From the sequence record MG655269.1: a DNA stretch of 64,000 nt; one strand, written 5' to 3'. Made by a program: the position numbers and the translations under genes. A model generated the notes under the pieces. It worked only from the letters and a program-made list of their open reading frames with translations. It was not told the origin of the DNA and did no database searches. How positions within the stretch are numbered: position 1 is the first letter of the stretch; every line of letters begins with the position of its first letter. Below, piece by piece: positions 4,211-31,285 of the stretch.

Positions 4211-4912
4211 ATGACTACCCGTAAGATTGCTCGCTTAGACAAACTCGCTAAATTTGTAAACGACAATTTTGATCGTGATTACAACCTGCCATTTGCGATC
4301 GAGATCGAACAGCATGAAGATAAGTGGCACGGTGTTCGATACAGCCTCAACCTGACTCAGCCAGAGTGTGACGGTAGTCCTGTAAAAACGTTATTCCGTT
4401 CGAAGATGTTACCGGCTGAATTCGTTGGTGATCGGTTTACACGGCTAGAAGGCAGTGTGGCCGGAATGGCATCTGGGATTGAACTCCTGGGACAAGTTGC
4501 CTGGTACTGGATGTTATCAGAGGCAAACGACACTGATCGCGAATTGGGTGTGCAGGTAGCGTTGATGGCCTGGGATGCCTGGACACTGGCAACCGCCATA
4601 TTTGATGGCTCTAAGGCCCGTGATCTCTTCGAGCGTGACGATTTCCTTTGCCCTGGCGTAACACTGAATCAGCACGTCCTGTGCGAAAAGTTTGTCAGAA
4701 TGGATCGTGAAGTATGGCTAAAGCGTCGCACTAAACTGCTCGATGATGTTGTGGTTATTGAAAGTCGCTGGACCTTCGTAAAACAATATATCGGGGCAGG
4801 TGGCCTGGGTCATGAAGAGAAACACACTGTCGCCGAGGTTACCAAACGCAGGCAAGCACCGGCGCCTTTTGAAATTATCTTTAAGGCCAAATCGTCTCCT
4901 TTTAATCCATGA
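4211..4912 (+). CDS. hypothetical early protein
   Basis: 233-aa ORF, RBS GAGGA, first gene after promoter motif. Confidence 0.75.
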   Translation: MTTRKIARLDKLAKFVNDNFDRDYNLPFAIEIEQHEDKWHGVRYSLNLTQPECDGSPVKTLFRSKMLPAEFVGDRFTRLEGSVAGMASGIELLGQVAWYWMLSEANDTDRELGVQVALMAWDAWTLATAIFDGSKARDLFERDDFLCPGVTLNQHVLCEKFVRMDREVWLKRRTKLLDDVVVIESRWTFVKQYIGAGGLGHEEKHTVAEVTKRRQAPAPFEIIFKAKSSPFNP

Positions 4913-9100: not shown

Positions 9101-9937
9101 ATGCACTTACTTGATAGTCCTGACGTTTGGATGCCCATACCTGGATTCTCACGTTACGAGATCAATGAGGTAGGTGTAGTCAGGAATTGGAATAAACAAA
9201 TCATTAGCCAATCTAAATGGGGTGATTACTTAAAGGTTGTTATTGCGGCCGATGACGGCGAACAGCGGATGATCATGGTCCATGTTGCGCTATGCCTCGC
9301 CTTCCATGGCAAGCGTCCCGATCTAGGTCCTAATGTTCTAGTAGTAACAGTAAACCATAAAGACGGTAATAAAGAAAACAATACCAAATCTAATGTCGAG
9401 TGGGTGTCTAACTCAGACAACGTGTTACATGCCTATAAGACTCGTCTTAACAAGACATCTCAGCATGTGTTGATCGATGATGAGTTAACCGGCGAGCGAT
9501 TCTCGGTACATTCTTACGAAGAGCTTATGCGCTGGGTCGGTAGTCCTCATTTGAAAGGCCGAATCTTTTGTAGCATATACCGAGACAAACTTTATCAAGA
9601 TAGATATCGAATCACCGAATTACCTGGTTATGAACCAGGGTCAGGTGCGGCGGCAGCTATTCAGATTAAAGTGTTCGATATTGCGGCAAAGCATAATTTA
9701 CGGAAGAGCGCATATGACGGCTATGTATTTGGCAGCGTCGATGAAGCTTCCGGAATGTTAAGTTTGAGTGTGTCGCGTATAAAAACGATATTAAGGCTGG
9801 GTAACCTGATTTTATTCAACGGTTACCTTTTCATGAAAGCTAACGATATGCGAACTATACCTGGTTTCACTAAAGAACAAGTGGAAAAGTCACTTCGCAT
9901 ATTTAAAGCAAAACAACGACGTAAGAACATTTACTAA
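9101..9937 (+). mobile_element. free-standing NUMOD4-HNH homing endonuclease
   Basis: W.PIPGFSRYEIN..G.VRN (NUMOD4); VH...AF, VNHKDGNKENN..SNVEWV...N..HA (HNH); directly upstream of nrdB. Confidence 0.88.
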
Positions 9938-9950
9938 AGGTAAACACAGC

Positions 9951-11087
9951 ATGCAGTACAGTACTTTCAACCAGAATAAAGTTGACTATCTCCAAGAACC
10001 AATGTTCTTTGGTGAAGCCGTGTCTGTTTCTCGCTACGACCAACAGCGTTATGAAATCTTTGAAAAATTGATCGAGAAACAACACAGTTTCTTCTGGCGT
10101 GAGATTGAGGTCGATGTGTCTAAGGATCGTATTGATTTCAATACAAAGCTCACCGACAGTGAAAAACACATCTTCATCAGCAATTTGAAATACCAAACCC
10201 TGCTGGACTCGATTCAGGGTCGCAGTCCTAACGTGGCCTTGCTGCCGATCTGTTCTATCCCGGAACTCGAAACCTGGATTGAAACCTGGGCATTCTCTGA
10301 AACGATCCACTCGCGCTCATACACCCACATCATCCGTAATGTGTTCAATGAACCAGGGGTGGTGTTTGATGATATCGTCACTAACGAACACATCAAAGCC
10401 CGCGCAGCATCAGCAACCAAATACTACGATGAGTTGATTGAACTCACGTCTTACTGGAATCTGTTGGGTGAAGGCACTCACGTGGTCAACGGTAAGAAAG
10501 TCGTGGTTAGTCTTCGTGCACTGAAACGCCTGCTATTTCTCTGTATGGTGTCTGTTAACGCATTAGAAGCTGTTCGTTTCTATGTGTCGTTCGCCTGTTC
10601 ATTTGCCTTTGCTGAACGTGAGTTGATGGAAGGCAATGCCAAGATCATTAAACTGATCGCCCGCGATGAAGCCCTGCACCTGACCGGCACTCAGTACATG
10701 ATCAATCTCTTGAAGTCTGGCGAAGATGATGCTGAGATGGCGGAGATCGTTAAAGAGTGCTGGAAGGAAGCCTGGGACATTTTTGTCGAAGTTGCCGAAC
10801 AAGAGAAAGATTGGGCAGCTTACTTGTTCCAGGACGGCGGAATGATTGGTCTGACGGAGAAGGTGATCGTTCAATATATTGAATATATCACTAACGTCCG
10901 CATGCGGGCTATCGGAATGGATATTCCATTCCCTAACACCACCAGTAATCCAATCCCATGGATCAACTCCTGGCTGGTCTCTGACAACGTGCAAGTCGCT
11001 CCACAGGAAACAGAAATTACATCCTATCTGGTCGGTCAGATCGACTCGAAAGTGGACGCCAACGATTTCGACGATTTCCAACTGTAA
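9951..11087 (+). CDS. nrdB: ribonucleotide reductase class Ia beta subunit
   Basis: [40 protein letters not shown] and C-terminal [11 protein letters not shown]; colinear with E. coli NrdB. Confidence 0.97.
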
Positions 11088-17616: not shown

Positions 17617-17640
17617 AGTGAAAGCTATCCCTTTTATGCC
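17611..17640 (+). terminator. hairpin + TTATGCC terminator
   Basis: AGGGATAG-TGAAAG-CTATCCCT stem then TTTATGCC. Confidence 0.75.
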
Positions 17641-19315: not shown

Positions 19316-19464
19316 TCAATCATATACGTAAAGGGGTCTGGCGAAAGCCATATCCCTTTTGGTTATGCTGTCTTTTTTTTGGTTAAGAAATACTAGCCTT
19401 CTCCATTATATGCAATTTACACGATACACTTTTCTATTTATTACATCAGCAAGAGAGATAAGAC

Positions 19465-19608
19465 ATGAGCGCACCTGAAGAATTTGATATGGACGGCCTG
19501 GAAGCACTGGATCTGGAAGGCGCTGAGAAAGCGGCAGAAGAGAAAGCAGCCGGCGGTGGCGAAGCCCTGTCTGATGGCGAAGCAGATTGCGAAGGTTGCA
19601 AGATCTAA
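19465..19608 (+). CDS. 47-aa acidic peptide ending DCEGCKI, resembling the NrdA C-terminal redox tail (not in ORF track)
   Basis: Translated by hand: MSAPEEFDMDGLEALDLEGAEKAAEEKAAGGGEALSDGEADCEGCKI; in-frame TAA at 19459-19461 upstream. Confidence 0.7.
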   Translation: MSAPEEFDMDGLEALDLEGAEKAAEEKAAGGGEALSDGEADCEGCKI

Positions 19609-20650: not shown

Positions 20651-20656
20651 GAAAAC

Positions 20657-20688
20657 AGGGGGCGGGATTTCCTGCCCCTTTTATGCCG
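20657..20688 (+). terminator. hairpin + TTATGCCG terminator
   Basis: GC-rich stem then TTTTATGCCG. Confidence 0.7.
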
Positions 20689-21702: not shown

Positions 21703-21734
21703 AGGGGAGGTGTGATCACTCCCCTTTTATGCCG
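21703..21734 (+). terminator. hairpin + TTATGCCG terminator
   Basis: AGGGGAG...CTCCCCT stem then TTTATGCCG. Confidence 0.7.
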
Positions 21735-21778
21735 GGCGAGGAATCGTATAGGTGCTTTTGCCAACGAGGAATCTTATC

Positions 21779-22561
21779 GTGTTTGAAATGCTTTTAGGCG
21801 GTAGTCCGAACGGGAACTTGCCATTTGGGCAGTTGTTAGCCAAAACAACAACAGACTTTACAGTCCCTGCCGGAGTGACCGATATTTCCGGTGTTGCTAT
21901 CGGTGGCGGCGGCGGGAACTCACGCGGCAATACCATTGGTGGGTCAGGGGGTGATTTGCGCTGGCGGAATCACATTGCCGTTATTCCAGGTGAAGTGCTG
22001 TCACTTATTACCGGTGTGGTAACAGCGGCTGGTAAACCGGGCACCTCCAGTAAGATCATCCGTAAGTCAACCGGCGAAGTATTACTGATCGCTAAAGGCG
22101 GTGACTCCACCGATGTATCAACGCCGATCAATGGAGCTGATATAGGTGGAGGGAACGGCGGTGTTGGCACCAATCCATCAGGTGGTGGAGCTGGCGGGTA
22201 TACCGGCAATGGCGGTAAAGGTGGTTCAGCTGCCGATGTTGACTCTGGCGGTGGTGGCGGTGGTAGCTCTTATACCTTCAGCGGAAACAGTTTTGGTTGT
22301 GGCGGTGGGGGCATCTACCCTAACGGCAAAGGCGCTGATGGTGGTGCGCCGCCTGTCAATACCGGCAGTCAGGCATTTGGTGGCAGAGGGGGTTCTGGTG
22401 GTAATCCTGGTCAAAACACGAATGGGGGCTTATACGGCGGTGGTGCTGGCGCACCCATTAGGATAACCTATGCAACAACAGGGACTGCTGGCTGCATCCG
22501 ACTCATTTGGGGTTCAGGTCGCGCCTTCCCAGCTACGAAGACTGCAGATATTACAGCTTAA
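21779..22561 (+). CDS. glycine-rich putative virion/tail-associated protein (MFEML family)
   Basis: GTG start giving MFEMLLGG; F.VPAGV..I, GGDLR, PGEVL, GG repeats, GCIRLIWG.GRAFP. Confidence 0.75.
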   Translation: MFEMLLGGSPNGNLPFGQLLAKTTTDFTVPAGVTDISGVAIGGGGGNSRGNTIGGSGGDLRWRNHIAVIPGEVLSLITGVVTAAGKPGTSSKIIRKSTGEVLLIAKGGDSTDVSTPINGADIGGGNGGVGTNPSGGGAGGYTGNGGKGGSAADVDSGGGGGGSSYTFSGNSFGCGGGGIYPNGKGADGGAPPVNTGSQAFGGRGGSGGNPGQNTNGGLYGGGAGAPIRITYATTGTAGCIRLIWGSGRAFPATKTADITA

Positions 22562-22570
22562 GGACTGATC

Positions 22571-23176
22571 ATGTTTGAAATGTTATTTTGCGGCAAGCCA
22601 GCATCAGTTGGCGGCCAACAACTCTTCACTACTGCCGGTACCTTTAGCTTTGTAGTCCCGGCGGGGATTACTGAGCTCGACGCCTATACTCAAGGTGGTG
22701 GCGGTGGTGGCGGTAATGGTAACCCAGGTGTATACAAAGGAGCGTCAGGCGGCTCTGGCAAAGTAGGTGCTAACGGTTATCTGAACAATATTTCAGTTAC
22801 ACCCGGTGAAACACTGACCGTTATTGTTGGTGCTGCAGGTGCGGCATTAAAAGCTGGGGAGGCGACCCAATTACTTCGTGGCAGTAACGTGTTACTTGCT
22901 GTAGCGGGTGGGGCCGCAGGTGTTACAGCAACTGGCACAAGCAGTTCTGAGAACAACCTAGGCACTAGCGGTACCGCGGCACCAACGATTCCAGGTAATA
23001 CCACAACCTACCCTGCTGCAAACAAACGCCCTGGAAGTGGTGGTAACGGTGGTGCGGGGCGTTACAACGGCGGGGGTGGCATAGTGACCGGACCAGGTAT
23101 CGCAGGTGGCTGCCGCCTGATGTGGGGTAAAGATCGCGATTACCCATCAACAGGCGTAGCTGACGTCAAGATGTAA
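22571..23176 (+). CDS. glycine-rich putative virion/tail-associated protein (MFEML family)
   Basis: MFEMLFCG, FVVPAGIT, VTPGETL, GGCRLMWG.DR.YP. Confidence 0.75.
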   Translation: MFEMLFCGKPASVGGQQLFTTAGTFSFVVPAGITELDAYTQGGGGGGGNGNPGVYKGASGGSGKVGANGYLNNISVTPGETLTVIVGAAGAALKAGEATQLLRGSNVLLAVAGGAAGVTATGTSSSENNLGTSGTAAPTIPGNTTTYPAANKRPGSGGNGGAGRYNGGGGIVTGPGIAGGCRLMWGKDRDYPSTGVADVKM

Positions 23177-29671: not shown

Positions 29672-31285
29672 ATGCACATTCAAGATATGACTTTTCGCAT
29701 TCACACAACTATAAGTTCACGTGACGATCTGGATAACGTTGTTCGCCTGGTCAATCAAAATGATGAGGTGATTATTGAACACGCACTTCATGACGCCATG
29801 CTGCCTGTAATTTATCAAAATGATAAACTGGCTGCTGCGTATTTGGCGGTGGTTTACATGTACACCCGTGACATGCCAGAAGGACAAGGTGCGGCAAGCT
29901 ATGACTTCCATCGTACGGCCGGCATTATCCTGGATCAGTTTGTAGAAGACAGTAACCTGGGTGAGTTCGAAGCAGATGACTGGGGTCAGATTGAAGTGAT
30001 GGTACCCAACCTACCAGAAGGGGTGCGGGCCTTTGTACATACCACCGATGGGTCTGATGTGAACATCCGTATCTATCGCCAAGACCGCGGTCTGGTGAAT
30101 GAGCGTCTGTTTACCTACAGCGATGAAGAGACGGTTCCTTCTATTGAAGAGATGCTTGCGCAATGGGATGCTGATGTCGCTCCTACCGCAGATCCGGTAC
30201 AGGAAAACGCAGCCAGCATCTCGTTTGGTGACGTCTCCTTTATTTACACCCTGGACATGAGCAAGGAAGGGCGCGAGCAACGTAAAGCTATCATGCAGGT
30301 GGTAATTGGTGATCGCCTGGTGGCACAACATAAAGTCCATGAGAACACCCAACCGCTCATGTATTACATGATGGAAGTGTTCAACATGCTGGCGCTGCGC
30401 ATGACCGTGGGTCCGGTAGAAGGCATTAACGCTCAAGACCGGGTAACCTTACTGACGGCTATCAGCGGGTTTGTGGGCGGGCATTTAGCGATGCCAGATC
30501 AGGTGCAGATCGCAGAAGGTATGCAGTACATGCACGAAGGTGCGATCAGTGATGAGGTAACCTACATGGTTTCACATCAGTTGATTGCTGACAACCATCT
30601 GCGGGCGACCTACCAGTTCAATACCGTGGTCGATGAAACGATGCGTCGTTCAATCACCATGTGTGATGAAGTGAGCTACCTGGAAAACCCGATGAGTCCA
30701 CAGGCGTTCTTCAATGCGTATCAGGCAGACCTCAGCCGTGAGCTGAAACTGTCTCGGATGTTTGACATCGCAATGATTGCGGCCATCGATCGCGGTCAGG
30801 GTCTCGGTAAAGATAACGAACTGTTGTATCGTATCAAAGAAGACATGAAGTACTTCAAAGAGATGACACTGCATTCACCGGTGATCATGGGACGGAAAAC
30901 GTATGAGTCGTTACCGAATCCGTTGGTAGATCGCCTGAACATCGTTATCACTACCGCCCCGACCAACACCTATACCACCCGCTCAGGCGTGGTGTTCGTC
31001 AACAGCAAAGAAGAAGCCCTGCTGCACGCGAAGGGTTATCTGGCTGAACATGGCGGTGATAAGATCTGGATTATCGGGGGTGCGAGTATCTATGCTGCAT
31101 TCCTGCCGGATGCCAAAGAGATCCACCTGACCACCATCGGTACTGAACGTGAAGATGCTGATACGTTCTTCCCGGAAGTTGATCTGCGTCAGTTTAACGC
31201 TGCACGTCAGTTTGAAGAAGACCAGGTGTTCGAGCGTGAAGGTGAAACCTTTGGCTACAACCGTGTCATCCTGACCCGTAAGTAA
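29672..31285 (+). CDS. folA: fusion: about 365-aa unknown N-terminal region + C-terminal dihydrofolate reductase
   Basis: IAMIAAID..QGLG.DNEL...IKEDMKYFK..T...PVIMGRKTYESLP.PL.DRLNIVIT, IIGGASIY, DADTFFP. Confidence 0.88.
   Translation: MHIQDMTFRIHTTISSRDDLDNVVRLVNQNDEVIIEHALHDAMLPVIYQNDKLAAAYLAVVYMYTRDMPEGQGAASYDFHRTAGIILDQFVEDSNLGEFEADDWGQIEVMVPNLPEGVRAFVHTTDGSDVNIRIYRQDRGLVNERLFTYSDEETVPSIEEMLAQWDADVAPTADPVQENAASISFGDVSFIYTLDMSKEGREQRKAIMQVVIGDRLVAQHKVHENTQPLMYYMMEVFNMLALRMTVGPVEGINAQDRVTLLTAISGFVGGHLAMPDQVQIAEGMQYMHEGAISDEVTYMVSHQLIADNHLRATYQFNTVVDETMRRSITMCDEVSYLENPMSPQAFFNAYQADLSRELKLSRMFDIAMIAAIDRGQGLGKDNELLYRIKEDMKYFKEMTLHSPVIMGRKTYESLPNPLVDRLNIVITTAPTNTYTTRSGVVFVNSKEEALLHAKGYLAEHGGDKIWIIGGASIYAAFLPDAKEIHLTTIGTEREDADTFFPEVDLRQFNAARQFEEDQVFEREGETFGYNRVILTRK

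Follow-up and report, generated by a model that had tools for sequence, protein, structure and literature searches.

The window, by which we mean the whole 64,000-nt stretch of DNA analyzed here, is 100% identical to positions 62001-126000 of the record for Erwinia phage vB_EamM_MadMel (MG655269.1). This jumbo phage belongs to the genus Agricanvirus; its genome measures 275 kb and encodes a homologue of chimallin as well as split multisubunit RNA polymerases. Within the window lies gp108, a short open reading frame (ORF) that the record annotates as "hypothetical protein"; the features in and around it are collected in Table 1. The original prediction had described an ORF for 47 residues, ending in DGEADCEGCKI and preceded closely by an in-frame stop codon. 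Both statements are correct, the stop being a TAA at 19459-19461, one codon before the ATG. Is this short ORF a gene? It is found in 17 of 17 Agricanvirus records, and also in metagenomic and more distant uncultured relatives. The pairwise dN/dS values (Table 1) indicate purifying selection, and across ten homologues the residues of the C-terminal tail are fixed while their codons vary synonymously, at third positions. gp108 also matches the profile of phrog_10239, to which no function is assigned there, over its full length (E 3e-29). No family in Pfam or NCBIfam matched it, nor did any PDB sequence match the peptide, even at E 10. gp108 is a real, conserved protein-coding gene.

The sequence upstream of gp108 has its own conserved features. 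A purine-rich run resembling a Shine-Dalgarno sequence lies closest to the gene, followed further upstream by a near-invariant 11-nt block and by a hairpin with a T run that is likely the terminator of gp107. This hairpin is conserved, with stem changes, in the relative L012, and a simple terminator scan did not call it. A promoter scan of the region before gp108 returned no sigma-70-like site. The 11-nt block, which is not repeated elsewhere in the window beyond chance, may be a candidate promoter element for a phage RNA polymerase. The stable hairpin with its T run, together with the strong conservation of the intergenic region, suggests that gp108 opens a transcription unit; it is probably the first gene of the next unit after gp107. 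Elsewhere in the window, a different 11-mer, CCCTTTTATGC, occurs on the plus strand in three intergenic regions (17629-17639, 20676-20686 and 21722-21732). A hairpin at 20656-20674 directly precedes one copy, and a spaced version follows the hairpin 5' of gp108, so this 11-mer may be a shared phage terminator or promoter element. Two further observations concern genes nearby. gp112 and gp113 (21752-23176) are adjacent glycine-rich ORFs that look like paralogues, the counterpart in a relative matching PF21722 (Gly_rich_2). gp123 (29672-31285), annotated as "dihydrofolate reductase", is 537 aa long, with the DHFR domain confined to residues 366-516 and no Pfam match for the first ~365 residues.

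Table 1. Features of the gp108 region and the ribonucleotide reductase gene of the window (window coordinates)
Feature	Position	Strand	Basis
gp91, orphan nrdB of class Ia; the phage has no other RNR gene	9951..11087	+	PF00268, E 1e-48
Hairpin followed by T run, likely gp107 terminator	19330..19380	+	RNA fold -21.9 kcal/mol, z -4.0
Near-invariant 11-nt block	19403..19413	+	~52 nt 5' of the gp108 ATG; 10 of 11 columns invariant in 6 diverged relatives
Purine-rich, Shine-Dalgarno-like run	19451-19458	+	GAGA core invariant in a 6-sequence upstream alignment
gp108, 47-aa acidic protein	19465..19608 (stop codon included)	+	phrog_10239 member; pairwise dN/dS 0.15-0.41
gp108 residues 1-31, acidic N-terminal part with a Gly run at its end	19465..19557	+	AlphaFold2; kept in phage and bacterial homologues
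gp108 residues 37-47, putative NrdA-type tail	19573..19605	+	19.3-bit matrix score; tail-to-tail hhalign; pLDDT ~50

The most telling part of gp108 is its end. NrdA C-termini were gathered from 75 viral loci that had been located via their nrdB, and the 59 distinct tails among them comprise 53 with a CX2C pair, five with CX4C and one with CX3C. Asp or Glu residues stand before the pair, and the tails nearly always end in Ile. gp108 has the same arrangement, with a cysteine pair in its last nine residues, acidic residues before it, and two residues ending in Ile after it: Cys42 (19588-19590) and Cys45 (19597-19599) form a CX2C that is followed by a C-terminal Lys-Ile. On a position matrix built from the 53 viral CX2C tails, the end of gp108 reaches 19.3 bits. 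Across the genome there are 4881 stop-to-stop ORF ends, with a mean score of -27 (sd 5.9), and the runner-up among them has 0.3. Profile comparison with hhalign aligned the phage family to NrdA C-termini over the last 11 columns only, tail on tail (P 1.3e-4), and a bacterial family of 43-aa proteins, described below, likewise tail to tail (P 1.6e-5). Both P values compare 11-14 residues, and neither would hold up if every protein family were searched. As a negative control, the tails of NrdB, just as acidic, gave P 0.27 for the bacterial family and P 0.35 for the phage family. The predicted resemblance of the gp108 C-terminus to the redox tail of NrdA is statistically supported and goes far beyond chance, the end of gp108 being the single outlier among all these ORF ends. 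Judged by these comparisons, the likeness is real and is confined to the tail: outside it gp108 and NrdA have no sequence likeness, and gp108 has no Pfam match to the catalytic barrel of ribonucleotide reductase (RNR), PF02867. A two-headed mimic, with an N-terminal part resembling the C-terminal tail of NrdB, was considered and rejected at hhalign P 0.27 and 0.35. The last seven residues of gp108 also occur at the end of a true NrdA that is followed by nrdB, in a metagenome-assembled genome labelled Candidatus Scybalousia scybalohippi (L170:7005-7028, minus strand).

The remainder of gp108 is predicted to be a small helical element. AlphaFold2, run on the peptide alone with a 10-sequence alignment, places helices at residues 9-14 and 17-31 (pLDDT 76-78) and leaves the last third unstructured (pLDDT ~50), a model of moderate confidence. 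Such a model agrees with a short stalk that bears a flexible tail. The string GLEA within the stalk had been likened to a prohead-protease site, with the implication that the peptide might be packaged, as are protease substrates of phiKZ-like phages. The string is indeed present, at residues 11-14, but homologues differ at Gly11 and Glu13. Mass spectrometry of RAY and Deimos-Minion lysates, in which a 47-aa protein is easily missed, does not list the peptide (PMC6690015), and these data give no support to its packaging.

Where does gp108 come from? An exact-pattern DNA scan for DCEGCKI followed by a stop codon, using one genome per bacterial species, returned at least 120 stretches. Among the matches listed, almost all belong to Erwinia, Pantoea, Serratia, Rahnella, Hafnia, Sodalis, Tatumella, Budvicia and their relatives, and the motif forms, with few exceptions, the end of an ORF of 43 aa. 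The encoded protein is annotated as a hypothetical protein (e.g., P0026, P0041, P0056 and P0068), and single clusters of it cover as many as 1000 contigs. At 62 or more of the 120 listed loci, the ORF lies just 3' of a yedI-like gene for a DUF808 membrane protein, and the gene is present in Erwinia piriflorinigrans and E. tasmaniensis, close relatives of E. amylovora. The phage and bacterial families align by hhalign with 97.9% probability (E 5.5e-13, 32 columns), and the Erwinia protein P0026 matches the phrog_10239 profile at E 1.5e-6. These matches indicate that gp108 is homologous to a chromosomal 43-aa family of Erwiniaceae, Yersiniaceae, Hafniaceae and Budviciaceae. The presence of a chromosomal homologue in the family of the host argues that gp108 is a captured host gene rather than a phage invention. 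The two proteins have an identical tail and the same architecture, whereas the phage copies have four more residues, a Gly-rich linker and a diverged N-terminus. They also differ in location, the phage copies lying among nucleotide-metabolism genes and the bacterial copies beside yedI. A DNA search of E. coli found no homologue of the 43-aa protein; the slot 3' of yedI is filled there by the unrelated yodC. E. coli YpaB, encoded by a 47-aa gene beside nrdA, was considered as a relative and is unrelated. Some UniRef entries (P0028, P0035 and P0043) name the 43-aa protein "Conjugal transfer protein TraD", probably by automatic transfer from an acidic tail, with no real relation. Separately, a chromosome record of Pantoea stewartii ATCC 8199 (L175; motif at 4409-4432, minus strand) carries a copy of the phage type instead of the host type. 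Because parts of this region share 89-97% identity with the L021 contig from IMG/VR, it is a prophage-like or contaminating phage segment.

The family also extends to phages beyond Agricanvirus. A profile search of 1.84 billion representatives recovered 17 proteins at E 0.001 or better, 15 of which were inspected. Some members consist of the module alone (44-64 aa), whereas in others, of 127-296 aa, it forms the end of a longer protein; in all of them it occupies the extreme C-terminus. Two search artefacts were set aside, namely the repeat protein P0010 and P0067, which resembles a tape-measure protein and had been placed in the same cluster. The N-terminal parts of the longer members are of several, unrelated kinds and belong to no Pfam family. 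For example, gp034 of Erwinia phage pEa_SNUABM_5 (Rivsvirus) is a 208-aa protein with the module at its end, encoded between the genes for dCMP deaminase and thymidylate synthase. In Yersinia phage fHe-Yen9-02, the module is the 52-aa gp167. Genes of dNTP metabolism lie nearby in other phages too: MadMel has a MazG-like gene (by annotation only) and a thymidine kinase gene as neighbors, and the relative L022 has thymidylate synthase just 5' of the peptide gene. Family tails are either CX2C (DCEGCKI) or CX4C (e.g., CESGACSI, CEGGACKI or CEGGGCKI). Enterobacterial NrdA tails read CESGACKI or CEGGACKI, and the CX4C peptide tails match these, so that the variant forms of the module reproduce natural variants of NrdA. 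The part of pEa_SNUABM_5 gp034 ahead of the module is hyperacidic (L103:21507-22133; 45 Asp and 34 Glu in the 208 residues of the protein), and its N-terminal segment recurs in P0020, with a related segment in P0017 and P0021. A radical SAM protein (Radical_SAM plus Fer4_12) is shared by an Agricanvirus-like relative (L013:6295-7458), fHe-Yen9-02 (L109:11674-13068) and pEa_SNUABM_5 (L107:26510-27670).

What RNR genes do these phages have? The original prediction had noted nrdB and no nrdA in the window, and this extends to the whole 275-kb MadMel genome: no nrdA is annotated, and none was found by tblastn with NrdA of T4-like phage F2, E. coli or Colwellia phage 9A. The phage beta subunit must hence pair with host alpha, if it works at all. 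The NrdB encoded by gp91 is 75% identical to that of E. coli and ~74-75% identical to that of Erwinia pyrifoliae, compared with 64% for its best phage relative and 52% for T4-like NrdB; its last four residues are those of Erwinia NrdB. The Deimos-Minion orthologue has been detected by mass spectrometry (PMC6690015), and nrdB-only phages have been noted previously (PMC3653736). Neither nrdA nor nrdB was found in the genomes of pEa_SNUABM_5 and fHe-Yen9-02, each of which was covered in full. On the host side, the NrdA proteins of Erwinia pyrifoliae, E. tracheiphila, Pantoea and Leminorella are full length with an intact CX4C tail, which argues that the 43-aa protein is an addition and not a split-off piece. 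MadMel has no relative of the Colwellia-phage 9A glutaredoxin (Grx), and a non-exhaustive scan found no annotated small redoxin-type CxxC ORF.

In the window, an HNH endonuclease gene lies directly 5' of nrdB (9101-11087 for the two). The 17 Agricanvirus records hold two nrdB alleles with ~80% DNA identity, and in most records of the other allele group the match falls into two pieces, with an HNH or homing endonuclease gene annotated under it. The reversed gene order has been noted in a published comparison (PMC6690015). In Erwinia pyrifoliae CP139347.1 (L241), nrdB matches lie in two reading frames and no gene is called; the single frame change is possibly an assembly error.

What might a free NrdA-type tail do? 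In class Ia RNR, electrons are thought to pass from thioredoxin (Trx) or Grx to the tethered tail of alpha and on to the active site. The known partners of the tail are Trx/Grx and the active-site disulfide of alpha, and in a published model exit of the tail and its re-reduction limit RNR turnover, and a second, parallel dithiol raises activity (PMC4078304). Under this model, a soluble tail could plausibly benefit a phage that depends on a fixed pool of host alpha. We tentatively favor a role of this kind, in which the gp108 family would be a soluble NrdA-type dithiol tail that engages Trx/Grx and/or host NrdA and sustains turnover of host alpha; we consider it quite possible, at somewhat under an even chance. 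The protein would carry a C-terminal cysteine-pair tail, joined by a flexible linker to a short helical stalk of acidic character. The free tail would engage the partners of the NrdA tail, being reduced by host Trx/Grx and/or entering the active site of host NrdA. It would thereby modulate, and for the phage most likely sustain, the turnover of host alpha, on which the phage would depend because it brings only the beta subunit. We infer here which partners it has, that it acts in redox chemistry and in which direction it affects turnover. Among the functions put forward in the original prediction, that of a decoy or booster for host Trx/Grx or host NrdA appears to be the best of those remaining. 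A broader version is rather unlikely. In it, a redox tail of RNR alpha that acts in trans would be encoded both by the Erwinia-Serratia-Hafnia group of Enterobacterales and by several jumbo phages, as a small-protein co-substrate or regulator, so far overlooked, of class Ia ribonucleotide reduction in bacteria; phages reliant on host NrdA would have captured it and, in some lineages, grafted it onto other proteins.

Several considerations count against an RNR role. First, the bacterial 43-aa gene sits beside a yedI-like gene and not beside nrdAB or trx/grx. Second, the hosts already own an intact NrdA tail, and the need for a second one is not evident. Third, a free tail must compete with the tethered one. 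Fourth, a CxxC at a flexible end could equally bind metal. Fifth, the gp108 peptide is not reported in lysate proteomics. In addition, the absence of the gene from E. coli means that the family is not a general requirement of RNR.

The strongest alternative, though a rather unlikely one in our view, is that the CxxC end is a metal-binding or other redox motif unrelated to RNR, and that its likeness to NrdA reflects convergence on a short acidic end with a cysteine pair. The protein could then dimerize through zinc, buffer metal or, as an acidic mimic, bind another host protein. A similarity that spans 11-14 residues is consistent with this, as is a bacterial gene that adjoins a yedI-like DUF808 gene with no RNR or redoxin genes as neighbors. 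The pEa_SNUABM_5 version, with 79 Asp/Glu in 208 aa, is hyperacidic in the manner of mimic-type proteins, and the bacterial protein goes in some sources by the name of TraD, whose acidic tail is unrelated. Convergence leaves unexplained, however, why the family switches between CX2C and CX4C in forms that copy natural NrdA tails residue for residue, and why the final residue pair conforms to that of NrdA; moreover, two cysteines alone make a poor metal site.

A second alternative takes the tail as a decoy substrate that soaks up reduced Trx/Grx, or traps them in mixed disulfides, and so redirects or dampens thiol-redox processes of the host instead of feeding RNR. It draws on the same tail evidence as the favored role. 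The search with the 9A glutaredoxin and the redoxin-motif scan found no Trx/Grx-like gene in the phage, so host redoxins would be needed, and the module also occurs in phages without any RNR gene. A purely hostile role is nevertheless hard to fit with a host that encodes the same protein for itself, and phages that invest in genes for dNTP synthesis need host RNR running. We regard this alternative as improbable.

Two further readings fare worse. gp108 could be the precursor of a RiPP, a ribosomal peptide matured by a radical SAM enzyme: its small size, its acidity and the Gly run ahead of its cysteine-containing end would suit such a peptide, and the Agricanvirus-like relative L013 has a radical SAM gene 2.5 kb upstream, as fHe-Yen9-02 has four genes downstream. 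MadMel has no radical SAM homologue, however, none lies within 8 kb at the 120 listed bacterial loci, the pEa_SNUABM_5 gene is ~200 kb from the module, no SPASM domain was detected, and the module also ends large proteins, all of which makes a RiPP highly improbable. Finally, the proposal that the peptide supplies in trans the tail missing from a tail-less phage NrdA has only the tail resemblance in its favor and is practically ruled out by the lack of nrdA in MadMel, pEa_SNUABM_5 and fHe-Yen9-02 and by the intact tails of host NrdA; the expected co-occurrence of the peptide with a tail-less nrdA fails likewise in pEa_SNUABM_5 and fHe-Yen9-02, two unrelated module-bearing jumbo phages that hold no RNR genes.

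What are the implications of a soluble NrdA-type tail? If the family acts on electron delivery, it would be a new player for a textbook enzyme. It would also provide a concrete reason why phages with nrdB only, or with no RNR at all, still push dNTP synthesis by the host, and it would give a testable role to a protein that hundreds of Enterobacterales genomes encode, from plant-associated and clinical strains alike. Should convergence account for the likeness instead, gp108 still represents a conserved, host-derived small protein that has been adopted by two or more jumbo-phage lineages.

To our knowledge, no free-standing NrdA tail has been described, and the motif occurs in none of the papers searched. 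The closest comparison is with the tail of class Ia NrdA itself. Like that tail, gp108 has an acidic run, a cysteine pair, two final residues ending in Ile, and a flexible free C-terminus. It differs in that the tail is carried on a helical stalk of ~30 residues, and in the family also on unrelated proteins, with no catalytic barrel. A second comparison is with yeast Sml1, a small protein that, in work of Zhang et al. from 2007 (reference 16 of PMC4078304), reportedly disturbs the action of the C-terminal tail of R1. Both would be small proteins proposed to act on the step at which the alpha tail regenerates the active site; Sml1, in contrast, is eukaryotic and is not a tail mimic, and gp108 has no sequence relation to it, having no match in Pfam, NCBIfam or PDB sequences. 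A third comparison is with Facklamia ignava, in which a glutaredoxin domain is reported to be fused to NrdB (PMC6187632). This sets a precedent for reshuffling the electron-delivery parts of RNR between polypeptides, with the difference that in F. ignava the reductant is fused to beta, whereas gp108 would be the shuttle tail detached from alpha.
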